Virus record (IMG/VR): IMGVR_UViG_3300035180_001778
Coordinates: 186,001 to 250,000 of that record
Direction: 5' to 3' (one strand)
Length of the DNA stretch: 64,000 nt
Below are positions 4,469 to 63,708 of the stretch, in pieces (position 1 is the first letter of the stretch; the number at the start of each line of letters is the position of its first letter). The translations under genes were made by a program, and so were the position numbers. A model generated the notes under the pieces. The model saw nothing but the letters and a program-made list of their open reading frames with translations. It did not search any database and had not been told where the DNA came from.

Positions 4469-5350
4469 CTAGAAGCGCTGAACCACGACGCGGGTGAGAG
4501 CCTTCGGGTTGAAGGCGCCGATGCCCACGTTCTCGAAGCACGAGAAGCCGATCGTGCGTGCCTTGGGATCGTCGGCCGAGAGGACCGTCAGCTCCGTGCG
4601 GACCGGGAAGCGACCGAAGTTCTCGGGTTCCGCGCAGATGTAGACGAACCCGACGGGGACGAGCCTCGACGTGATGATCTGCGCGCCCCAGAGGACGGCC
4701 TGGAGGCCGGTCTTGAGGAGGGTGGCCTGGCTCTCGATGTCCAGGATGTCACGGCCGAACTTGCGGATGTCCGCGTAGTCGACCGCGTTCATGTAGATCC
4801 GGGCAACCCGGAGGTCGTGACGCTCGATCTCGGCGAACGCGTCCGCGAGGACGGCCGGAGAGATGGGAGCCACCACCGCGACGTCAGGGTTCGACTGCCC
4901 GGGGAGGGTGTCGAAGCCGGAGACGGCGATCGAGTCGAGAACCGTGAAGACGCGCTCGTCTTCCGCGGCCTGGATCTGGGCCTTCGCGAGGTCCTGCGAA
5001 CGCTCGATGAGGTCGAAGCGACGCTCCTTGATCTGCGTGAGCGGGATCTCGGGGTTCGAGGCGATCTCGAACAGCGGGAAGATGACCCGACGCGGCTTCT
5101 GGATCGCGAGGATGTTCTGACCCTCTTCGCCGACCACGAAGGCCGTGACGTCGGGATCCTTGTCGTAGATGGGCAGCGCTCCATCCGGTAGCTGCTCGAC
5201 GAGGAAGGTCTTGCGACCGACCGCGGTGTAGTCACGACGCAGCCGAAGGGGCTGGATCATCGATGCAGCGAGCTTTGCACGGCCGGCGGCCGTCTTGATG
5301 TACTCGCTGATGATTTGCTGCTTCAGCTCGTTGGAAACCTGGTTGTTCAT
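4469..5350 (-). CDS. Major capsid protein (HK97-fold, jumbo-phage type)
   Basis: GRAKLAASMIQPLRLRRDY...GRKTFLVEQLPDGALPIYDKD pattern; follows protease, scaffold and decoration genes; strong codon bias; GAGGA Shine-Dalgarno. Confidence 0.85.
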   Translation of the reverse strand: MNNQVSNELKQQIISEYIKTAAGRAKLAASMIQPLRLRRDYTAVGRKTFLVEQLPDGALPIYDKDPDVTAFVVGEEGQNILAIQKPRRVIFPLFEIASNPEIPLTQIKERRFDLIERSQDLAKAQIQAAEDERVFTVLDSIAVSGFDTLPGQSNPDVAVVAPISPAVLADAFAEIERHDLRVARIYMNAVDYADIRKFGRDILDIESQATLLKTGLQAVLWGAQIITSRLVPVGFVYICAEPENFGRFPVRTELTVLSADDPKARTIGFSCFENVGIGAFNPKALTRVVVQRF

Positions 5351-5387
5351 GTCGTCCTCTTTTGCTCCTCAGAAGTCCGGTGTTTGA

Positions 5388-6017
5388 TCAGACCCGCAGG
5401 TCGATCACGAGGAGCGACGAGTTGGCGTCCGGAGCCACCTTCACGATGCCGATCAGGGTCACGAAAGGCAGGCTGTTCTGCCCCGAGACGTTGTACTCGT
5501 AGGCGTCCGCGAGGACGTTGGTGACGAGTCCGTTGACCGAAGCGTAGACCGCATCCCCAGCCGCGTAGACGACCGCGGTCCCGGGAGAGCTGATCTGGGT
5601 CTTCGTCTCGTAGATCGAGAGACCCGCCGTGGTGCCCGAGCCACAGGCGTAGGGCCCACGGTTCGAGGCGACACCAGGGGTGTTCTCGAAGGCGTTCCCG
5701 AGGCTGTCGTTCAGGTAGATGCCCAGCGGCTTGATCTTGGCGTCGTAGGCAGCCGAGACCTTGACAGGCCCACCGTGGAACCCATTGCCGTAGTCGTAGC
5801 GAGTGAAGGCGATGGATCCGCCAAGCACTCCGAGCTTGCTGATGTTCGAGAGGGTGGCGGACTTCTGCGTGGTGACGACGGGGGGATTGGCCTGTGTGAA
5901 CGAATCCGGCGTCAGAACACCCACGGCATTGCGCGTGACGATGTTGAGAAGCTGGACCCGTGACGCGGTCTCCTTGAAGTCACCCGAAGACTGTCCGCCG
6001 ATGGCGAAGGAACTCAT
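5388..6017 (-). CDS. Head decoration/cement-like protein
   Basis: Beta-rich 209 aa directly upstream of the capsid gene; AAGGAG Shine-Dalgarno. Confidence 0.6.
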   Translation of the reverse strand: MSSFAIGGQSSGDFKETASRVQLLNIVTRNAVGVLTPDSFTQANPPVVTTQKSATLSNISKLGVLGGSIAFTRYDYGNGFHGGPVKVSAAYDAKIKPLGIYLNDSLGNAFENTPGVASNRGPYACGSGTTAGLSIYETKTQISSPGTAVVYAAGDAVYASVNGLVTNVLADAYEYNVSGQNSLPFVTLIGIVKVAPDANSSLLVIDLRV

Positions 6018-6113
6018 TTTGTATCTACTCCCTTAGCGTGGCGTGATTTCGGGTGTTAATTCGATTCGATCCCGCCCGTGAGGGCGTACCAGAGGTCCTT
6101 TCGGACGGCTGGT

Positions 6114-7370
6114 TCACTTCATGTTGAAGGCGTCGCGAACATCGGGAGCCGAGGGCCAGAGGGCCGAGAGCTTGTCGATGTCGTTGCCAGAGCGATTGCC
6201 CGAGCCAGCCACCCCGCCGCCGACCCGCGAGACACCGCCCGTGGGACGAGTCCCGACCGTGCGAGTCGAAGCCGTGCGGCCCATGCCAGCCTGCTTCTGC
6301 TGTTGCGCGCCCTGCTGAGCCTGCTGAGCCTGCTCCGCGTCCTGCGACTCCTGAGTTGCGAAGAGGGTCTTGAGGACGTCGTCCTCCGGACCGAGCTGCA
6401 TCTCCCCGCCATCGCCGAGGTCCATCGGAGGAGCGTCCAGCTCAATGTCCGATTCAGACATGTCGCCGCCGCCCATCCCGCCGCCCATGAGGTCGTCGAG
6501 GAGAGCGTCATCCGACTGCTGTTGCATCGGCATCTGCTGTTGCGAGACCTGCTGCTGTTGCGGCATCTGCTGCGACTGCTGCATCTGGGGCATCTGCTGC
6601 TGAGCCTGTTGCTGCTGCGGCATCTGCTGATCGTTCGCGCGAAGGACACCCGCCTGCTTGAGAGCAGCGGTGACAGCCGCCTGGACAACCTGCATGATGT
6701 CCGGAGACATCGCGGGAGCCTGGGTGGTCTGCGTGGCCGCGGGCGCAGCGACACTGGTCGATGAGGCCCTCGCCATGTCGACAGGAGCCGGCATGGCGAG
6801 GGCCTCATCGAGAGCCAGCTTGGCTCCAGCGAGGTCGCCAGCCTGGAAGGCCTTCTGAGCGCGGAGCTGAAGGGCAGCCTGCTTCTGCTGAGCCTTCTCC
6901 TTGTCCTGATCGTCCTGCGACTGACCCTGCTGAGCGAGACGCTCAGAGAGGCTGGCGTAGGTCGCGATGAGGGCCGCGTCCGGCACATGCATCAGATTGA
7001 CCGCCTGATCCTCGATGGCCAACTCGGGAGCCGTGTTGCCGAGCATCATTCGAGCGAGCTTGACGGTGAAATCTGCCTTCTTCATGTAGAACTTTTCAGA
7101 CGCAGCCGTCTTCTCAGGGTGGTTGTAGGTTTCGGGGCGCTTCTCCGGCATGCCGATCTCGTCACGCTTGGTCTGCCCACCCGAGTACTCCTTCTCCCAC
7201 TCATTGGGGGAGTGAATGTCCTCCGCCCACGAAGACGGATCTCCGTTGGTGTACTTGTCCGCCGAAGGCTGTTGGCTGAGGTGGTCCTGATTCATGGACC
7301 GGGGGTCCTCTGCCGTCCGCGACGACCCCTGCTTGATCTGATCTCGGTTCCAGGTGGTGCGTGTACGCAT
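6114..7370 (-). CDS. Putative scaffolding protein (Gln-rich)
   Basis: Lies between the protease and capsid genes; low-complexity Q/M/P tracts; many KQA/RTA motifs. Confidence 0.6.
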   Translation of the reverse strand: MRTRTTWNRDQIKQGSSRTAEDPRSMNQDHLSQQPSADKYTNGDPSSWAEDIHSPNEWEKEYSGGQTKRDEIGMPEKRPETYNHPEKTAASEKFYMKKADFTVKLARMMLGNTAPELAIEDQAVNLMHVPDAALIATYASLSERLAQQGQSQDDQDKEKAQQKQAALQLRAQKAFQAGDLAGAKLALDEALAMPAPVDMARASSTSVAAPAATQTTQAPAMSPDIMQVVQAAVTAALKQAGVLRANDQQMPQQQQAQQQMPQMQQSQQMPQQQQVSQQQMPMQQQSDDALLDDLMGGGMGGGDMSESDIELDAPPMDLGDGGEMQLGPEDDVLKTLFATQESQDAEQAQQAQQGAQQQKQAGMGRTASTRTVGTRPTGGVSRVGGGVAGSGNRSGNDIDKLSALWPSAPDVRDAFNMK

Positions 7371-7459: not shown

Positions 7460-8947
7460 TCACGCACCCAACGAGAAGAGTTGACCCTTGACCAAGAGTG
7501 CCTTCTTCTCGTCCTCGGAGGGCTCACGTCCGAGGGCATGACAGCAAGCCGTCATGTATTGCGTGACATCACGGTAGCGGGACGTCCCCCCAACCGCGAC
7601 CACGGCCCGATAGATCCGGCCTTCCCCTGCCATCATGGTTCGCTTGCTTGCGAGGTCCACAATGCGGGAAACAGCCAGGATTTCACGTCCGCTGAGCCTT
7701 TTTGAAGCTTGCACAGCACCCCAACCACCCGTCTTGAGGAGGATGAGACCCAAAAGGGTTTGCCGTGCAGACCTACCACCCCCAACAGTCGCCACCAAGG
7801 AACGAGCCACCTCTTTCCAGACGGGATTCCGGAGAGCGGACTTGATGAGGGTATCGTTGTCGTTCGCGTCCCCAATCGGGGAATCGCTCTTGGCCATATC
7901 CCCACGCACCTTCTCCAGAGCCTTCTCCTGGAGAGTTGCGGCAAGGTCATCGACGGCCTTGTCGAAGGGAGCCTTCTCCGGGGCCTTGGGGGCGGGAGTG
8001 GGAGGCTTGGTGACATCCTCCTTTTCCTGAGAATCGTCACCCCCAAATTGAGCTTTCCGAATGAGGCTGTAGGCAGCCTTCTGGAAGAGATCCGGATTTG
8101 CCACCCGAGTACCCCCAGCGAATGCCGCCTGAATCTGACCCCCATAAGTGGCAATCTCTTCGGGGGATAGGATGCTGCGAAGGACGGCGCCCGTGAAAGC
8201 TGGGTTTGCAACCCAGCTCGCCTCGATGAATTTGACACTCCCGGGCTCGTCTGCGATGTGCCCGCACAGCTCTGCGATCCGACGTTTGTTGCCGAAGTCG
8301 TCAACCCACTCGTTGCCCTTGGCGTAGCGAATGTCGGGACAGAGCTGCGTCTCGTCGTAGGCGACGTTGCCGCACTTCGTGCAGACGGTGAACTCGACCT
8401 GGCACCCCATCGAGAGGGTCTGAAGCTGGCCGCTCGTGATGGCCGAGATGAGGGGGCGGTGCTTCCGATCCGTGGCCACGAGGATGTCCACATAGATGGA
8501 GTCCCCGATATCCCGAGCCGCAGCGTCGATGATCTTCCCGCGAGACATCTCTGGGATCTGAATGTGCTCGACGTAGTTCTCCCCGCCAATGAACGTACGG
8601 AAGCACGACAGAAGGAGCTTCCGCTCCCAGGCATCGTGGTTGTTGTTGATGTACTTCGACGTCTTGGGGGCGATCAGCCAGTCCTTGTACTTGCGGGTGA
8701 TCGGGAAGCCCGCGACAACCTGTTCCCCAAGCTCTGCCGGGCTCTCTTCCGTGTCGACCGAGGCGATGATCGTACAGTGGGAGAGCATGAAGCTCGAAGG
8801 GTCATACTTCTGGAAGACGACCTTGGCAGCGGCACGATCAGCGAAGGGGTTCCCCTTCATCTGACTCTTGCTCTTGACTTCATCCCAGCCCGCGAACTTG
8901 ATGTCCGGCTTGACGATGGCTGCGTTTGCGTAGCGTAGGAAGGCCAT
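7460..8947 (-). CDS. Prohead maturation protease
   Basis: NNNHDAW, YVEH, TLSMGC, CTKCGN and FIEASWVANPAF motifs typical of large-phage head proteases. Confidence 0.75.
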   Translation of the reverse strand: MAFLRYANAAIVKPDIKFAGWDEVKSKSQMKGNPFADRAAAKVVFQKYDPSSFMLSHCTIIASVDTEESPAELGEQVVAGFPITRKYKDWLIAPKTSKYINNNHDAWERKLLLSCFRTFIGGENYVEHIQIPEMSRGKIIDAAARDIGDSIYVDILVATDRKHRPLISAITSGQLQTLSMGCQVEFTVCTKCGNVAYDETQLCPDIRYAKGNEWVDDFGNKRRIAELCGHIADEPGSVKFIEASWVANPAFTGAVLRSILSPEEIATYGGQIQAAFAGGTRVANPDLFQKAAYSLIRKAQFGGDDSQEKEDVTKPPTPAPKAPEKAPFDKAVDDLAATLQEKALEKVRGDMAKSDSPIGDANDNDTLIKSALRNPVWKEVARSLVATVGGGRSARQTLLGLILLKTGGWGAVQASKRLSGREILAVSRIVDLASKRTMMAGEGRIYRAVVAVGGTSRYRDVTQYMTACCHALGREPSEDEKKALLVKGQLFSLGA

Positions 8948-53759: not shown

Positions 53760-53787
53760 CCTACATGAGCACCATGAACGGGATCAA
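53760..53787 (-). promoter_or_regulatory. Phage promoter TTGATC-N16-TGTAGG
   Basis: Exact motif and spacing. Confidence 0.7.
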
Positions 53788-56399: not shown

Positions 56400-56623
56400 C
56401 TACTTCCAACGTCCGCGTTTTTCGCGAGGCACAGGCCAGAGTCCTTGTGCCTCCAAAACAGAACGAAGCTCCAAGATCCGGATCTTGGAGCTTCGTCTCC
56501 AACGTCGAAGTGACCAGCGTAGCTTCAGAGCTAGACGATGCGCTCGTGACTTCCCAATCGACAGAGCCCACTCGGCTTCGTGCTCTTTTGAGACTGCCCG
56601 AGATTTACGACTGGGGGTCATTT

Positions 56624-57037: not shown

Positions 57038-57065
57038 GTTACACCGAAGTGTGAGGGACGGTCAA
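57038..57065 (-). promoter_or_regulatory. Phage promoter TTGACC-N16-TGTAAC upstream of the tRNA cluster
   Basis: Motif variant with identical spacing. Confidence 0.65.
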
Positions 57066-57072
57066 GGGTTTT

Positions 57073-57300
57073 CTACTTCCCGGCGTCGAGAAGCATCTTG
57101 CCCGTGGAGCTGGACGAAGACGAGCTGGAGGCCGTCGAGCTACCCGAGCTGGACGAGACCGAGCTGGAAGCCGAGCCGCCCGTTCCCGTGCTGGTCGTCG
57201 CGGTCGGTTGAACCGACGAGCAGGCGGACAGGATGATGGCACAAGCCAGAAGAGCGAGGGACTGCGTGAAACCCTTGAAAAGCATCGGGAAAGTCTCCAA
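57073..57300 (-). CDS. Small Ser/Thr-rich lipoprotein
   Basis: Signal peptide with lipobox LSAC; poly-Ser body. Confidence 0.55.
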   Translation of the reverse strand: METFPMLFKGFTQSLALLACAIILSACSSVQPTATTSTGTGGSASSSVSSSSGSSTASSSSSSSSTGKMLLDAGK

Positions 57301-57321
57301 TTCCGTTCCAATAGAAGCGAA

Positions 57322-57407
57322 TGGCGGAAGGCGGAGGAGTCGAACCCCAACGTGTCTAGCGCTCCCTGGCGTTCAAAACCAGTTTGCCTCCAATGGCGGC
57401 GCCTTCC
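57322..57407 (-). tRNA. tRNA-Ser(UGA), 8/4 fold
   Basis: Acceptor GGAAGGCG/CGCCUUCC, T-stem GGGG/CCUC, G73, CCA encoded. Confidence 0.85.
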
Positions 57408-58026: not shown

Positions 58027-58044
58027 GGGGTCTAGATACACCGA

Positions 58045-58224
58045 AGCGCTCCCCTTTGGGAGGGAGCTTGGACTCGGCGTTTGGGGGTCGTGGCGAGGTG
58101 AAGCGCGAGATCCCCATCCTATGGTCGGGCGGAGAATCCTGTTCGAGGCCTTCCGCGCGACACCGACCGGGGTTCCTGGTTGAGGACTCCCGGCTGTCCA
58201 AGCTCCCTTCCAGAAGGGAGCGCT
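58045..58224 (-). ncRNA. Structured ncRNA A: 180-nt rod with 29-nt closing stem (6S-like shape)
   Basis: 58045-58073 pairs with 58196-58224 (26/29 Watson-Crick); nested inner helices; own promoter. Confidence 0.6.
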
Positions 58225-58232
58225 GTGATCAT

Positions 58233-58260
58233 CCTACAGGTTGATGCCGCTGGGGATCAA
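58233..58260 (-). promoter_or_regulatory. Phage promoter TTGATC-N16-TGTAGG (ncRNA A)
   Basis: Exact motif, ending a few nt before the 5' end of the closing stem. Confidence 0.7.
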
Positions 58261-58264
58261 CCCG

Positions 58265-58545
58265 TTCGTTCGTATTCTGAGAAGAGTCCCCGAACAACCC
58301 CTTGGGACCAGCCTCAAGGCTGTTCGGGACACCGGGATCTCACCCCCAATGCTCTCTTGCCACGTTTTTCCGTCAGAACACCTGGTCGCGTCCTTGCGGC
58401 ACTCTTCGGAAGTCAGCTCGGTTTACGCCGAGCTGCTCCTCTCCGTGGGGACTGCCTTGTATGGCTCCCATCCCCATTCGAGAGCATTTCATGCTGACCG
58501 TGGGGTTTCCACAGTCGAGAGGACTCTTCTCAGAATACGAACGAA
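58265..58545 (-). ncRNA. Structured ncRNA B: multi-hairpin domain closed by a perfect 25-bp stem
   Basis: 58265-58289 is the exact reverse complement of 58521-58545; several hairpins with GNRA-like loops inside. Confidence 0.6.
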
Positions 58546-58547
58546 AC

Positions 58548-58626
58548 AACCAAGGGCGGATTCGAACCGCCTACCAATGGCGACCCTTTTGGAGAGTGCC
58601 CACCGCACCATGCGATGTCCTTGGTT
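58548..58626 (-). ncRNA. Atypical tRNA-like RNA, identity unclear
   Basis: Acceptor AACCAAG/CUUGGUU, perfect T-arm GGCGG-UUCGAAU-CCGCC, long D-stem, irregular anticodon arm. Confidence 0.55.
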
Positions 58627-58632
58627 AAAAAA

Positions 58633-58695
58633 CTGGGCGTCCTATCACTTAGACGACTCTCGTGAGAGAGGAAGGTGTCGAACCTTCATACCCAA
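58633..58695 (-). ncRNA. Circularly permuted tRNA-like module (T-arm, capped acceptor, D-arm)
   Basis: UUGGG-UAU-GAAGG UUCGACA CCUUC-CUCUC UCAC GAGAG-UC-GUCU AAGUGAUA GGAC-G-CCCAG. Confidence 0.6.
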
Positions 58696-58829
58696 CGGGG
58701 TGCCCGATACCAACGGACAGATGGGACTCGAACCCACCTCGACCCCTACTCTAAGAAGTCCGAACACGTTGGAAATTCACAGGTCTGCTTTCCACCGCAG
58801 AGCAAGCTTTAATCGTGTTCAGTCTTCGG

Positions 58830-58914
58830 TCGCAAGCCAGGGAGTCGAACCCCGCTTCACATCGATCACCTTGGAAGGCTGGCCGCCCGGCCACTTTTCG
58901 TCGATGCCCTGCGA
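58830..58914 (-). ncRNA. tRNA-like RNA with acceptor-like stem, T-arm and branched arm, lacking a D-arm
   Basis: UCGCAGG/CUUGCGA closing stem and CGGGG-UUCGACU-CCCUG arm; begins right after a promoter motif. Confidence 0.5.
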
Positions 58915-58921
58915 TGAGGGT

Positions 58922-58949
58922 CCTACAACGGGAGGACCTGCCCGATCAA
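58922..58949 (-). promoter_or_regulatory. Phage promoter TTGATC-N16-TGTAGG
   Basis: Exact motif and spacing. Confidence 0.7.
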
Positions 58950-58961
58950 CCTCAAAGACTT

Positions 58962-59348
58962 CTGAATAGTCGATCTGTGTGGCCGCTCAGGTGCAATCAC
59001 GGTAGTCATGTACCGGAGGATTGCCGATCCCGCCGCCTGGGTCTTCGGTCCGGGGGTGCCAGTTCGCCCTCTACGCTGGCACCCTTGTCCTTCCACACAG
59101 AATCAGAAACCTCAAGTCAGACCTACGTGGTCTTGACGTTGGCCGTTCCGGTGAGTCATGTCACCGAGGCTGCTCCCGCGTTGGCGTTGGGGTCTTGGGT
59201 CAGTGTTGGCGTCGAGTATCTTACCCACCTTGGAGGCATGGGTACCTTCTGAGCGCGCTTCTGACTTGTCCCTGCCACGCAGGCCTGACTTGAGGCGTCG
59301 TACTATTCAGTTGTCAATGACCGAGTCGGCTTTCGTTCTCCGTCTCGT
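58962..59348 (-). ncRNA. Structured ncRNA C (about 390 nt)
   Basis: 21-bp helix 59110-59130/59275-59295 with two G-U pairs on the minus strand; closing helix 58962-58970/59302-59310; twin CAUGAC-loop hairpins. Confidence 0.6.
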
Positions 59349-59354
59349 AGTAGT

Positions 59355-59382
59355 TCTACAGTCTGAGTCGTTCCCTGATCAA
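59355..59382 (-). promoter_or_regulatory. Phage promoter TTGATC-N16-TGTAGA (ncRNA C)
   Basis: Exact motif and spacing. Confidence 0.7.
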
Positions 59383-59402
59383 CCTCGGGGTGTTTTTTCT
59401 TG

Positions 59403-59551
59403 AGGTTCGGGTTGAGCAGAGCACAACCTTCGTGCTGACTCGAACAGCCACACCCAACCTTGGGATACCGGACTCGAACCGGAATACAGAGGCTTATGCT
59501 GCCCCTGTGAGATACCCTTCTCTCCAGTTGTGCTCTGCTCAACCCGAACCT
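59403..59551 (-). ncRNA. Structured ncRNA D: perfect 25-bp stem enclosing tRNA-like arms
   Basis: 59403-59427 is the exact reverse complement of 59527-59551; two UUCGAGU T-loops inside. Confidence 0.6.
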
Positions 59552-59553
59552 AG

Positions 59554-59638
59554 CGGAAGATAGAGGCGTCGAACCCCGGCAGATAAATCCGCCACACCGT
59601 TTTCCAAACGGGCCTCGCTCCGAGCGAGAATATCTTCC
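59554..59638 (-). tRNA. tRNA-Ser(GGA), 8/4 fold
   Basis: Acceptor GGAAGAUA/UAUCUUCC, 6-bp D-stem, long variable arm. Confidence 0.8.
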
Positions 59639-59644
59639 AAAACG

Positions 59645-59762
59645 TGGGGGAGTGTCCAGGAATCGAACCTGGCTAGCTTTTCAGCAGGTCATTGAGAGAA
59701 GGAGCATGTGGCCACATGCTCAAACCTCATAAAAACCCTCGTCTTCCAAGACGAACACTCCC
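59645..59762 (-). ncRNA. tRNA-His-like RNA with greatly extended anticodon arm
   Basis: G-1:C73-type acceptor with CCA, perfect T-arm, 118 nt long. Confidence 0.55.
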
Positions 59763-59764
59763 TT

Positions 59765-59834
59765 TTTGCCGAGGGGAGTTGAACCCCCAACCTTCCCCTT
59801 GTGGGGGATGTTCTACCATTGGAACTACGGCTAC
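59765..59834 (-). pseudogene. Degenerate tRNA
   Basis: Intact D- and T-arms, only a 4-bp acceptor, 5-nt anticodon loop CACAA. Confidence 0.55.
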
Positions 59835-60186
59835 ATCTTGAGGGGGAAGCGACTCTGGCCTTACCCGCGGCCCCCAAGGGGGCGGGCCAGAGTCTTTTCA
59901 CCAAGGCCGGCGACCCTGGACTTCACGGCCCCGCTGCCTTTGGCAGATTCGGGGTAGTCTTACTCGCCTTCATCAGGGGAGCCCGTTTGAGTTTTCCTGT
60001 GGAGGGGTAACTCAGAAACCCAGGGATGTTTTGGACGGCCTTATCCCACCGAGCCGCCAAGCCTCGCATTGTAGCCCGGTATCACCCGGGGGCTTGGTCT
60101 ACGCGGTCTTTGTCCCGCATGGTCATCTGCATGTTTTCACTGTATCTCCTTCCGTCTCCTTTTCGTTTCAGCGTCTCGATGTAACC

Positions 60187-60214
60187 TCTACAGGCCGACC
60201 CCCAAGACGATCAA
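60187..60214 (-). promoter_or_regulatory. Phage promoter TTGATC-N16-TGTAGA at the head of the RNA island
   Basis: Exact motif and spacing. Confidence 0.7.
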
Positions 60215-60230
60215 CCGAATCGGATCTTTT

Positions 60231-61156
60231 CTACTGCGTCTCGGAAATGACGCGGAGCGTATGGTAGAACTGCGGTGCGTCATTCTCGTTCGGGATCCCG
60301 GCGGAGTTGCCGTCGTTGACCTCGATCACCCACCACTTCCCCTCGACATCCTGTGCAATGTCCAGGGCAGCGAAGGGGGTGCCCAGACGAGCCCCCACAG
60401 CTTGGAGCCAGGAAGCCGGGGATGCGCGTCGATGCTCTCGATGTAGGTAGCCCCCTCCGTCCAGTACCGATAGGTCGCGAAGGGCTGCCCCCTCAAGAAG
60501 AAGGTGCGGAACTCCTGAACCAGGGGCATCCGGCTCTTCGTGTGAATGCCCACTTGCTTGAGGTTCAAGAACTCGCGGAAGACCAAGCCTCCGTAGAAGT
60601 CGTCACCCTGCAACCGGATGAAGTTCGAAGCGACTCGGGTCACCTCCGTGGCGTCGCTCGCATCACGGATGAAGCAGGCGTCGAACCACTCGTGCTTCCG
60701 GCTCTTGAGGAAGTCCTTCACCATCACCGGCTTCGGGCCGAAGTTCATCTCCACAAGTGCGGCGACCTGCTCCATGGTCGGAGGCTTCTTCCACGAGATG
60801 ATCGAAGACCTCGGCGTCAGCTCCTTCAGATCGGCGTACCACCGAGGGAGGTCGTGCGACCACATGTAGTTCTCGGGGGTCGTGAGAAGACCCGGGACCA
60901 GCTCGACGAGCTGCTCGAACTCTTGGGGCTTGAGAATACACCCCCGGTAGAGAGCCGGACCCTTGATGCCGCTCCAGTGCTGTCGGTTGAGTGCCTCGTT
61001 TTCGGGAGTCACTCGGAAGGGCTCCCCGAAGACCCCGCCGCTCAAGAACGCGATCTGAAATCCAACCGAACGCGCAACTTCGATCTCGCCCACCCAGGAC
61101 GGGTCAGGAGTTCGGATCGTTCCGGGTTGTGCGGGGAATACCAGAGTGCAGTCCAT
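60231..61156 (-). pseudogene. ATP-grasp (R2K-like) protein, frameshifted near 60420
   Basis: VKDFLKSRKHEW and EFRTFF are in frame; the conserved tail LDIAQ...WWVIEVNDG is in the -1 frame and ends at TAG 60231-60233. Confidence 0.75.
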
Positions 61157-62064: not shown

Positions 62065-62081
62065 GGCTAGCCATACACCAG

Positions 62082-62168
62082 CGGAAGAAGGAGGAGTCGA
62101 ACCCCGGGCAGGTTTCCCCACCCACTTCGCTTTCCAAGCGAGCCCCGCTCCGAGCAGGAACATCTTCC
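62082..62168 (-). tRNA. tRNA-Ser(GGA), 8/4 fold (second copy)
   Basis: Acceptor GGAAGAUG/CUUCUUCC, T-stem GGGG/CCUC, long variable arm. Confidence 0.8.
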
Positions 62169-63654: not shown

Positions 63655-63708
63655 ATAATACAGGAAGGCCCTGGTTGCGATCAACCAAGGCCTTCCAATT
63701 CGAGAATT

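Follow-up and report, generated by a model that had tools for sequence, protein, structure and literature searches.

A ~2.2-kb island at positions 58045-60214, on the minus strand of a 64-kb window (the whole stretch of DNA that was analysed), is best explained, in our view, as a group of tRNA-derived small-RNA cassettes at the promoter-dense far end of an array of tRNA and transfer-messenger RNA (tmRNA) genes. We hold this overall explanation at not quite an even chance; that the elements of the island are real RNA genes is, in our estimate, very probable. The island carries promoters, is non-coding, retains conserved base pairing, has turned over by cassettes and has its ancestry in tRNA. 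The sequence read comprised the window plus ~24 kb more of the 350-kb genome around the island.

Two IMG/VR contigs, one of 350 kb and one of 235 kb, match the window sequence exactly, and scans of IMG/VR with AlkB and ATP-grasp returned only this one phage, twice. Window genes include those for capsid, terminase, replication, recombination and GroEL, and an array of at least 25 tRNA genes and tmRNA lies just past the window end, from which we take the source to be an uncultivated jumbo phage. The island lies ~3 kb downstream of tmRNA, and around it the last tRNA genes alternate with genes for an HNH nuclease, an Rv2179c-like exonuclease, an R2K ATP-grasp protein, AlkB and GroEL. GenBank phages gave no match to the island in DNA searches, whether set for near or for distant similarity, and no cultivated phage among them was alike in DNA. 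Relatives were collected through the AlkB and exonuclease proteins (loci L006, L007, L012/L018 and L014/L015); the DNA of L006 is ~87% identical to the window, and AlkB of L007 and L012/L018 shows 71-73% identity to window AlkB. In four DNA metagenomes the island was unchanged except for a T>C at 58418, in the helix-C domain, in one of the four, and covariation within the population is therefore absent.

A preliminary description of this DNA had reported a stretch of about 2.2 kb without a credible open reading frame (ORF), flanked by genes for AlkB, an ATP-grasp protein and a 3'-5' exoribonuclease, and this picture was borne out. The spread of GC content by codon position was 0.04-0.21 in the island compared to 0.34-0.57 in neighbouring genes, a Pfam search of nine island ORFs yielded none that was significant, and island ORFs are interrupted by insertions and deletions relative to L006. 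The island is non-coding. Its flanking genes encode an AlkB-like 2-oxoglutarate (2OG) oxygenase, the R2K ATP-grasp protein and the Rv2179c-like exonuclease. The long helices of that description were also recovered, as perfect 25-bp pairs (59527-59551/59403-59427 and 58521-58545/58265-58289), a ~22-bp helix (59297/59110) and a 29-nucleotide (nt) imperfect pair (58196-58224/58045-58073). Folding z scores were -5 to -8 in four of the five units, the first leader reaching only -1.6. The window contains 28 copies of the T-loop motif GTTCRANYC where 13 would be expected; seven of these lie within the island, where two variant T-loops read from the sequence (GGTTCGACG at 59573 and GGTTCGACA at 58685) bring the total to nine. 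This is the number given earlier, but the assignment of one of the nine to a normal tRNA did not stand: three are in tRNA-class genes (59834-59764, 59638-59554 and 58627-58546), none of which is a normal tRNA. The island had been left without a family name, and when it was searched with cmscan against 4227 Rfam families, with either the gathering score or an E value up to 10 as cut-off, also on its own, only tRNA-class models matched; recognisable GOLLD, ROOL, 6S, RNase P, SRP and riboswitch families are therefore excluded.

The motif TTGATC-N16-TGTAG, which had been described as a promoter at four minus-strand sites (60214, 59382, 58949 and 58260), was present at all four. Its 8 occurrences in the window compare to an expectation of 0.05, and none of 100 shuffles reached 8; half of these sites (4 of 8) fall in the island, within 3.4% of the window. 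The window, L006, L007, L012 and L014 together have 22 exact sites, none of them off the gene strand. A set of ~30 jumbo phages that are more distant has one exact site in total, on the opposite strand of L034. The clade consensus is GGTTGATC-N16-TGTAG-N6-CA. At the orthologous site of the third island promoter (P3), both motif blocks are invariant in four phages (window, L006, L007 and L012) and the spacer varies. Because the blocks are fixed while the spacer drifts, there is strong comparative evidence that TTGATC-N16-TGTAG serves as a clade-specific promoter. Set against the sigma-70 standard (hexamers like TTGACA and TATAAT, spaced by 16-18 nt, and A at -11), TTGATC as the -35 element and the spacing fit, but the -10 element, when counted from the start that the leaderless genes indicate, is TGTAGN with G at -11 and off consensus, and a generic sigma-70 promoter scan does not detect the sites.

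At 10 of the 22 sites an ATG is found with its A 8 nt past TGTAG; messages of this kind would be leaderless and would fix the start of transcription. The RNA starts predicted in the island are 60180, 59348, 58915 and 58226, and an ATG stands at none of them. The predicted transcripts of P1 and P3 begin alike, with CAUCG, 10 nt and then ACGAAAAG at identical positions, and the first 25 nt transcribed from P2 are a paralogue of the post-P1 bases, shifted by one base. Elsewhere, apparently leaderless genes with no ribosome-binding site were seen at 53787 and 53526 (minus strand) in the window, at 14327 in L006, 16948 in L012 and 11315 in L014, and at 8618, 15729, 15994 and 16369 in L007, and many clade genes appear leaderless. 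A promoter copy with one mismatch, TTGATC-N16-TGTAT, lies at 63658-63684 (minus strand) of the window, between the tmRNA gene and tRNA-Leu(CAA).

In the direction of transcription, the features of the island are the following.

60188..60214, minus strand: promoter P1 (GGTTGATC-N16-TGTAG), exact motif, in the same place in L006; predicted start 60180.
59835..60180, minus strand: leader RNA-A, ~345 nt, with a conserved, structured 3' half (59986-59843).
59764..59834, minus strand: TLE-0, a 71-nt tRNA-like gene (Rfam tRNA 37.3 bits; no ARAGORN call).
59645..59762, minus strand: TLE-2, a 118-nt cloverleaf-like RNA with an encoded CCA tail at 59647-59645.
59554..59638, minus strand: irregular tRNA-Ser(GGA), from the Rfam tRNA-Sec model (35.6 bits) and its fold.
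59403..59551, minus strand: helix-A domain, with a 26-bp closing helix (25-bp perfect repeat), a degenerate tRNA-like core and two T arms.
59356..59382, minus strand: promoter P2, exact motif; predicted start 59348.
58960..59348, minus strand: unit B, a ~390-nt RNA with an outer stem and two sub-domains (z = -6.0).
58923..58949, minus strand: promoter P3, exact motif; predicted start A58915.
58828..58915, minus strand: TLE-1, an 88-nt anticodon-less tRNA-like RNA that begins at the predicted P3 start.
58755..58827, minus strand: S2, a hairpin domain closed by 14 bp, after TLE-1.
58670..58745, minus strand: two solitary T-arm hairpins (GGUGGGUUCGAGUCCCAUC and GAAGGUUCGACACCUUC), read from the sequence.
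58546..58627, minus strand: irregular tRNA with anticodon CCA, tRNA-Sec-like (tRNA-Trp(CCA) in ARAGORN).
58265..58545, minus strand: helix-C domain, a 281-nt multi-branched RNA with a 25-bp perfect closing helix (z ~ -10).
58234..58260, minus strand: promoter P4, exact motif, kept in L006; predicted start 58226.
58042..58226, minus strand: unit D, a ~185-nt structured leader running into alkB (z = -5.3).

In the predicted fold of TLE-1, a 7-bp acceptor stem encloses a branched arm that bears two hairpins, followed by a linker of 5 nt and the T arm; the 3' end reads ACC(R). The loop of its first inner hairpin begins with GGG in all members and, in the modelled fold, may be the counterpart of the elbow-building GG of the D loop. 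Six sequences were aligned (window, L006, L007, L012, L019 and L017); 91.7% of cells were paired compared to 30-45% in slid controls, five pairs had changed on both sides, and the covariation score was reached by none of 500 shuffles. TLE-1 is 81-85% identical in L007 and L012, as against 72-75% for the flanking protein genes, which were compared in L007. A covariance model of TLE-1 (R1) gave 54-110 bits for members, and the best non-members were phage tRNA-Met(CAU) genes at 30-36 bits; when applied to ~40 loci of more distant jumbo phages, it found ordinary tRNAs only. The tRNA-Met(CAU) of the clade and TLE-1 share 5' AUCGC, the T arm and 3' GCGACC. Since the best non-member matches are clade tRNA-Met(CAU), TLE-1 is probably a tRNA-Met derivative that has lost its D and anticodon arms.

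Among phages TLE-1 was found in the window, L006, L007 and L012/L018. A homologue stands alone among ordinary bacterial genes in a Polyangiaceae bin (L019 1776-1869, metagenome-assembled genome JAPYTK010000009.1), and another lies in a short unassigned metagenome contig of 65% GC (L017 767-849). The 3' 28 nt of both copies are identical to phage TLE-1, and the remainder has diverged with compensatory changes. When the conserved 22-mer of TLE-1 was searched against viral, metagenome and genome collections, only three new places were found. The protein adjoining the L019 copy has two relatives, and a stretch by the L017 copy that resembles the C-terminal end of a tyrosine integrase gave no Pfam hit. 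The non-phage copies hint, weakly, at the host group, and the solitary bacterial homologue argues that TLE-1 has a function of its own.

Conserved pairing extends to the unit that begins at P1. TLE-2 folds with an 8-bp acceptor stem, a D-like hairpin (loop GGAA), a small variable (V) hairpin and a T arm, and its anticodon position is taken by a long helical arm ending in a palindromic hairpin cap with a GGCC tetraloop. Its folding z was -4.5 in the window and -4.3 in L006, and of 39 pairs compared between the two, 6 were compensated and none was broken. The corresponding model (R2) matched in the window and L006 only, and ordinary tRNAs alone were found with it in the ~40 loci of more distant jumbo phages. 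A tRNA-like element at L012 9250-9332, with a T arm, a palindromic hairpin (GCUUCCGGAAGC) replacing the anticodon loop and an encoded ACCA end, resembles TLE-2 in design, not in sequence. Both TLE-1 and TLE-2 have the acceptor stem of a tRNA and a T arm with a UUCRANY loop, but neither has a 7-nt anticodon loop (U33 plus anticodon) or a standard D arm; they drew no ARAGORN call and no match to an Rfam tRNA model at E up to 10. The tRNA mimics proposed in the preliminary description are thus represented by several elements without an anticodon arm.

In the helix-A domain (folding z = -9), 7 of 26 pairs are compensated relative to L006 and none is broken, with an interior only ~70% identical. 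Helices in the island have in this way been kept through compensatory changes in relatives, in agreement with the structured RNAs proposed before, and G-U pairs within the leader, TLE-1 and TLE-2 can form on the minus strand only. Of 70 predicted pairs in the leader, 9 have changed on both sides in L006, and 3 of the 42 pairs in its 3' half are compensated; the whole leader folds at the z of only -1.6 given above, its short ORF is not kept in L006, and BLAST with the leader found nothing outside L006. A candidate reading of the 3' half as RNase P RNA (AAGUCC, GGUGAAA, GGUAAG) was rejected, there being no match to an RNase P model even at E = 10. TLE-0 has a 4-bp acceptor stem with a weak or defective top and a 5-nt loop at the anticodon-loop position, and the loop sequence of its L006 orthologue differs. 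The irregular tRNA-Ser(GGA) at 59638-59554, a paralogue of tRNA-Ser(GGA) at 62081-62168, has an 8-bp acceptor stem and a G discriminator; its T stem is of 4 bp and closes a 7-nt loop, and its V arm and D stem are of 6 bp each.

One of the two sub-domains of unit B is closed by the ~22-bp helix (59297/59110); the unit also contains two hairpins with an identical 8-nt loop, ACAUGACU, and a CA-rich single-stranded stretch, and it has no homologue among ~40 loci or GenBank phages. The folding z of S2 is -3.1 in the window; in L006 it is -4.0, and one pair is compensated (A-U to G-C). A search for an acceptor partner of the solitary T arms at 58670-58745 found none. The tRNA with anticodon CCA has an 8-9-bp acceptor stem, a 4-5-bp T stem, a 6-7-bp D stem and a 6-bp anticodon stem; its predicted fold is of the 9/4 type with 7 bp in the D stem, it can also be read as 7/5, and its V region is only ~11 nt. 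It scored 40.6 bits with the tRNA-Sec model, whose gathering score is 47, and its anticodon is CCA, not UCA. It is 97% identical in L006, and its L012/L018 orthologue has an 8-nt anticodon loop (UCCA). ARAGORN called tRNAs with 8-nt anticodon loops at L012 8610-8691 and 1390-1469 (that is, L018 970-1051 and 8192-8271), with the four-base anticodons UCCA and UUUG, and these could be either frameshift-suppressor-like or non-decoding. Unit D, ~88% identical in L006, has two similar hairpins that are also able to pair with each other over a long range, and is most simply read as the 5' leader of alkB (ORF 58041-57445).

The content of the island differs between the window and L006 in whole blocks. 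Unit B is missing from L006 as a block, from GAGGTTGATC (59386) to the next GAGGTTGATC (58953) in the window; L006 also has no 8/4 tRNA-Ser at the position of 59638-59554, the solitary T-arm stretch at 58670-58745 is replaced, and the helix-C slot is occupied by a 71-aa ORF with a ribosome-binding site. Each long helix stops 5-21 nt short of the next promoter. Because promoters are internal to the island and modules are independently present or absent, the island reads as a mosaic of promoter-bounded modules and not as one large RNA; the modules would most simply have arisen by recombination between promoter copies. In L014, the interval between the exonuclease and GroEL genes (5340-7231) has an N6/N4 methyltransferase gene and TnpB (IS605 OrfB) in place of the RNA island and alkB.

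We envisage the following mechanism. Each cassette would start with the clade promoter, with transcription beginning 8 nt past TGTAG, and cassettes would be duplicated, lost and swapped via recombination between promoter copies. The transcripts would be polycistronic precursors with three kinds of product: two or three irregular, probably decodable tRNAs, including the 8/4 tRNA-Ser(GGA) and the Sec-like tRNA(CCA); TLE-0, TLE-1, TLE-2 and the helix-A core, with an acceptor stem, a T arm and a GG elbow loop and with no anticodon loop; and folded domains clamped by 22-26-bp helices. The tRNA-like ends would be trimmed by tRNA-processing enzymes, and the 22-26-bp helices may be cut or protected as RNase III-type stems, parting a unit from the next promoter. 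Since the anticodon-less RNAs are unable to decode, they are taken as mimics of the upper half of tRNA, which might occupy or recruit proteins that bind the acceptor end and elbow; from what is established about these protein families, candidate partners are defence toxins acting on the tRNA 3' end, the CCA-adding enzyme, RNase P, synthetases and EF-Tu. A mimic or decoy function of these RNAs is a tentative proposal that we consider rather doubtful on balance, and decoys against tRNA-targeting defence are a reasonable reading of it.

Several observations weigh against reading the island as tRNA-derived RNA cassettes. TLE-1 alone is no more stable than shuffled sequence (z about 0), and the folding energy of several units has no minus-strand preference, so that strand is not settled by folding energy. 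Covariation comes mostly from two or three lineages, chiefly the window and L006; unit B and helix C are without relatives, and their structure comes from folding energy alone. The perfect Watson-Crick helices would fit selection at the DNA level equally well, and no partner protein, RNA-repair or Ro gene was found when ~40 larger window ORFs were scanned. A further reading, which we judge somewhat unlikely, is that TLE-1 represents a new family of anticodon-less RNAs, derived from tRNA-Met and shared by bacteria and a clade of jumbo phages, the phage copy usurping or blocking the protein partner of the host RNA and the neighbour cassettes being arms-race mimics. TLE-1 would then be made from its own promoter, with its mature 5' end at the transcription start; the partner might be a tRNA-3'-end enzyme or a non-ribosomal user of charged tRNA, and the strain-specific unit B, helix C and TLE-2 would be the diversifying mimics. 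The elements may instead be processing or stability modules only, that is, RNase P/RNase Z marks and RNase III sites or clamps that help the true tRNAs and the alkB message to mature and keep them stable, and have no function in trans. They do adjoin real tRNA genes and a protein gene in head-to-tail order, the long helices end 5-21 nt ahead of the next promoter, and no strong terminator was found within the island; TLE-1, however, is the best conserved of the pieces and would open its transcript at the extreme 5' end, its solitary homologue sits in a bacterial intergenic region, and unit B and helix C have 280-390 nt of interior structure, beyond the needs of cutting marks. We regard this processing role as unlikely. 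It is decidedly improbable that the island is a product of decay, in which degenerating duplicated tRNA genes, recombination scars and a long 5' leader carry structure that is inherited and not selected. The repeated compensation of pairs in helix A and TLE-2, where none is broken, the intact promoters and the higher identity of TLE-1 (81-85% in L007 and L012) than of the flanking protein genes (72-75% in L007) argue against it, even though content is strongly different between 87%-identical phages, the solitary T arms have no acceptors, the TLE-0 acceptor stem is defective and the adjoining ATP-grasp gene is frameshifted.

On a reading at the level of DNA, the inverted repeats would not be RNA helices; they would bound miniature mobile elements, serve as recombination sites or mark an origin-like region. 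The two 25-bp helices are perfectly Watson-Crick, as DNA the TLE-2 arm forms a perfect palindrome in the window as well as in L006, cassettes have been gained and lost, and a TnpB/IS605 gene lies in the corresponding variable region of L014. Nevertheless, every repeat pair has a different sequence with no further copies in the window, helix B1 and the tRNA-like folds hold G-U pairs that suit one strand only, and it is promoter repeats, not inverted repeats, that form the cassette borders, which leaves this explanation very improbable. A very slight chance attaches to a Y-RNA-like role, in which helix A and TLE-1 would, like YrlA, bind an Ro60/Rsr-type protein and keep an exonuclease tethered. 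No Rfam hit was obtained, helix A is without the binding motif, and a TROVE gene was found neither among the larger window ORFs nor in the flanks of relatives nor next to the bacterial homologue in L019; a VWA protein of L007/L015 carries its VWA domain N-terminally, unlike Ro. To its credit, helix A has the YrlA layout of a long stem closing a tRNA-like module, an exonuclease gene is 1 kb off, TROVE proteins are encoded in some jumbo phages (PMC7824862), and TLE-1 contains G[AC]CGA[AG]AAG, which is near the motif GNCGAAN0-1G (PMC4201824) but has two bases, not 0-1, before the final G. Least of all do we credit a single large ornate RNA of the GOLLD/ROOL type made as one transcript, which we consider exceedingly unlikely: the size, the many helices and the place beside tRNAs would suit it, but the island has four internal promoters, its modules are singly present or absent in the close relative L006, and no GOLLD, ROOL or large RNA family matched at E up to 10. 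The likeness to such ornate RNAs drawn in the preliminary description thus gives way to separate cassettes, gained and lost between ~87% identical phages.

Further observations concern the surroundings of the island. The R2K ATP-grasp gene (60231-61156, minus strand) is in two frames, with a break near 60421 where a C run is one base shorter than in L006, in which the gene is intact (297 aa). Four metagenome assemblies match the window at this break, and the frameshift is therefore real; the split gene may be either a pseudogene or a slippery site. A T-loop element at 57326-57407 (minus strand) with a weak tRNA-Sec score of 25 bits overlaps the ORF 57039-57350; its L006 orthologue is called tRNA-Ser(UGA), and ARAGORN makes no call in the window. 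The sole strong terminator-like site nearby, a 16-bp perfect hairpin with a U-rich tail at 56462-56497 (minus strand), comes directly after tRNA-Thr and is kept in L006. A tRNA-Ile(GAU) of 84-88 nt with an extra arm was found at L004 6834-6917, L006 4351-4434, L012 4238-4325 and L014 1786-1869; the extra arm is unusual among isoleucine tRNAs, and the array of the clade seems rich in irregular tRNAs.

Phage tRNA clusters are commonly read as spare parts for codon usage or anti-defence. Here, four dedicated promoters serve non-decoding tRNA-shaped RNAs and helix-clamped RNAs that are exchanged as cassettes. If the RNAs are stable, they would offer a tractable case of acceptor and elbow mimicry of tRNA in phage-host conflict, and TLE-1 would tie a phage RNA to a bacterial small-RNA gene. 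The promoter rule (GGTTGATC-N16-TGTAG, with the start 8 nt on and often leaderless) should be of use in annotating genomes of the clade.

Non-decoding tRNA-like RNAs in viral tRNA clusters have precedents in T4 RNAs C and D, mycobacteriophage YrlA and the TMERs of a herpesvirus. T4 RNAs C and D ('species 1 and 2') are stable non-tRNA RNAs of the T4 tRNA cluster, matured with the tRNAs. The island is like them, by description only, in encoding non-tRNA RNAs among phage tRNA genes; they share the promoter of the tRNA operon, whereas the island has four dedicated promoters and far larger domains. The PeSL cassettes of T4-type phages, reportedly described by Arbiol and colleagues in 2010, are said to pair a repeated promoter motif with a stem-loop and to be exchanged among related phages within hyper-variable regions. 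Their payloads are small protein genes, whereas those of the island are mostly RNAs, although L006 has the 71-aa ORF in one slot. Large structured RNAs near phage tRNA genes are shared with GOLLD and ROOL, but the island is modular and matches neither model.

Irregular-tRNA polycistrons, allo-tRNAs and (8/4) tRNA-Ser have been found in phage tRNA clusters, and non-decoding or regulatory roles are suspected for them (Mukai et al., 2017, PMC5389517). The (8/4) tRNA-Ser has a 12-bp acceptor branch split 8/4, a long V arm, a long D stem, G73 or U73 and a serine anticodon, and the allo-tRNA/tRNA-Sec shape combines an acceptor stem extended to 8-9 bp with a short T stem; its D and anticodon stems are both of 6 bp, the D loop is small and the V arm long (PMC5389517). 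The tRNAs of the island are likewise tRNA-Sec-shaped, lie in a phage tRNA cluster and are strung together; by predicted fold and sequence 59638-59554 appears to agree with the (8/4) tRNA-Ser description, and 58627-58546 resembles an allo-tRNA or tRNA-Sec (PMC5389517). These two irregular tRNAs appear to belong to kinds already described. Unlike that set, TLE-0, TLE-1, TLE-2 and the helix-A core lack an anticodon loop altogether, each island block has a promoter of its own, and large domains closed by 22-26-bp helices are interleaved.

YrlA and other bacterial Y RNAs, which also occur in mycobacteriophages, are in some cases cut by RNase P and given CCA (PMC4201824). A Y RNA is recognised by a long end-to-end stem with GNCGAAN0-1G (PMC4201824) and by a Ro60/TROVE gene that shares its strand and lies no more than ~4 kb away. 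The island shares with YrlA the mimicry of tRNA with a T arm and a GG loop and the long closing stem, but has no Ro/TROVE neighbour, model match or binding motif, and TLE-1 and TLE-2 are open at the acceptor end, as a tRNA is, while YrlA opens at the anticodon-stem end. The TMERs of murine gammaherpesvirus 68 are also clustered, individually promoted, non-decoding tRNA-like RNAs with stem-loops (PMC4337559); they are transcribed by eukaryotic RNA polymerase III, are matured by tRNA-processing enzymes, have stem-loops that yield microRNAs and share no homology with the island. Against these known systems, what is new in the island is its dedicated promoters, the anticodon-less TLE-1 and TLE-2, the helix-clamped domains, the cassette behaviour and the bacterial homologue of TLE-1.

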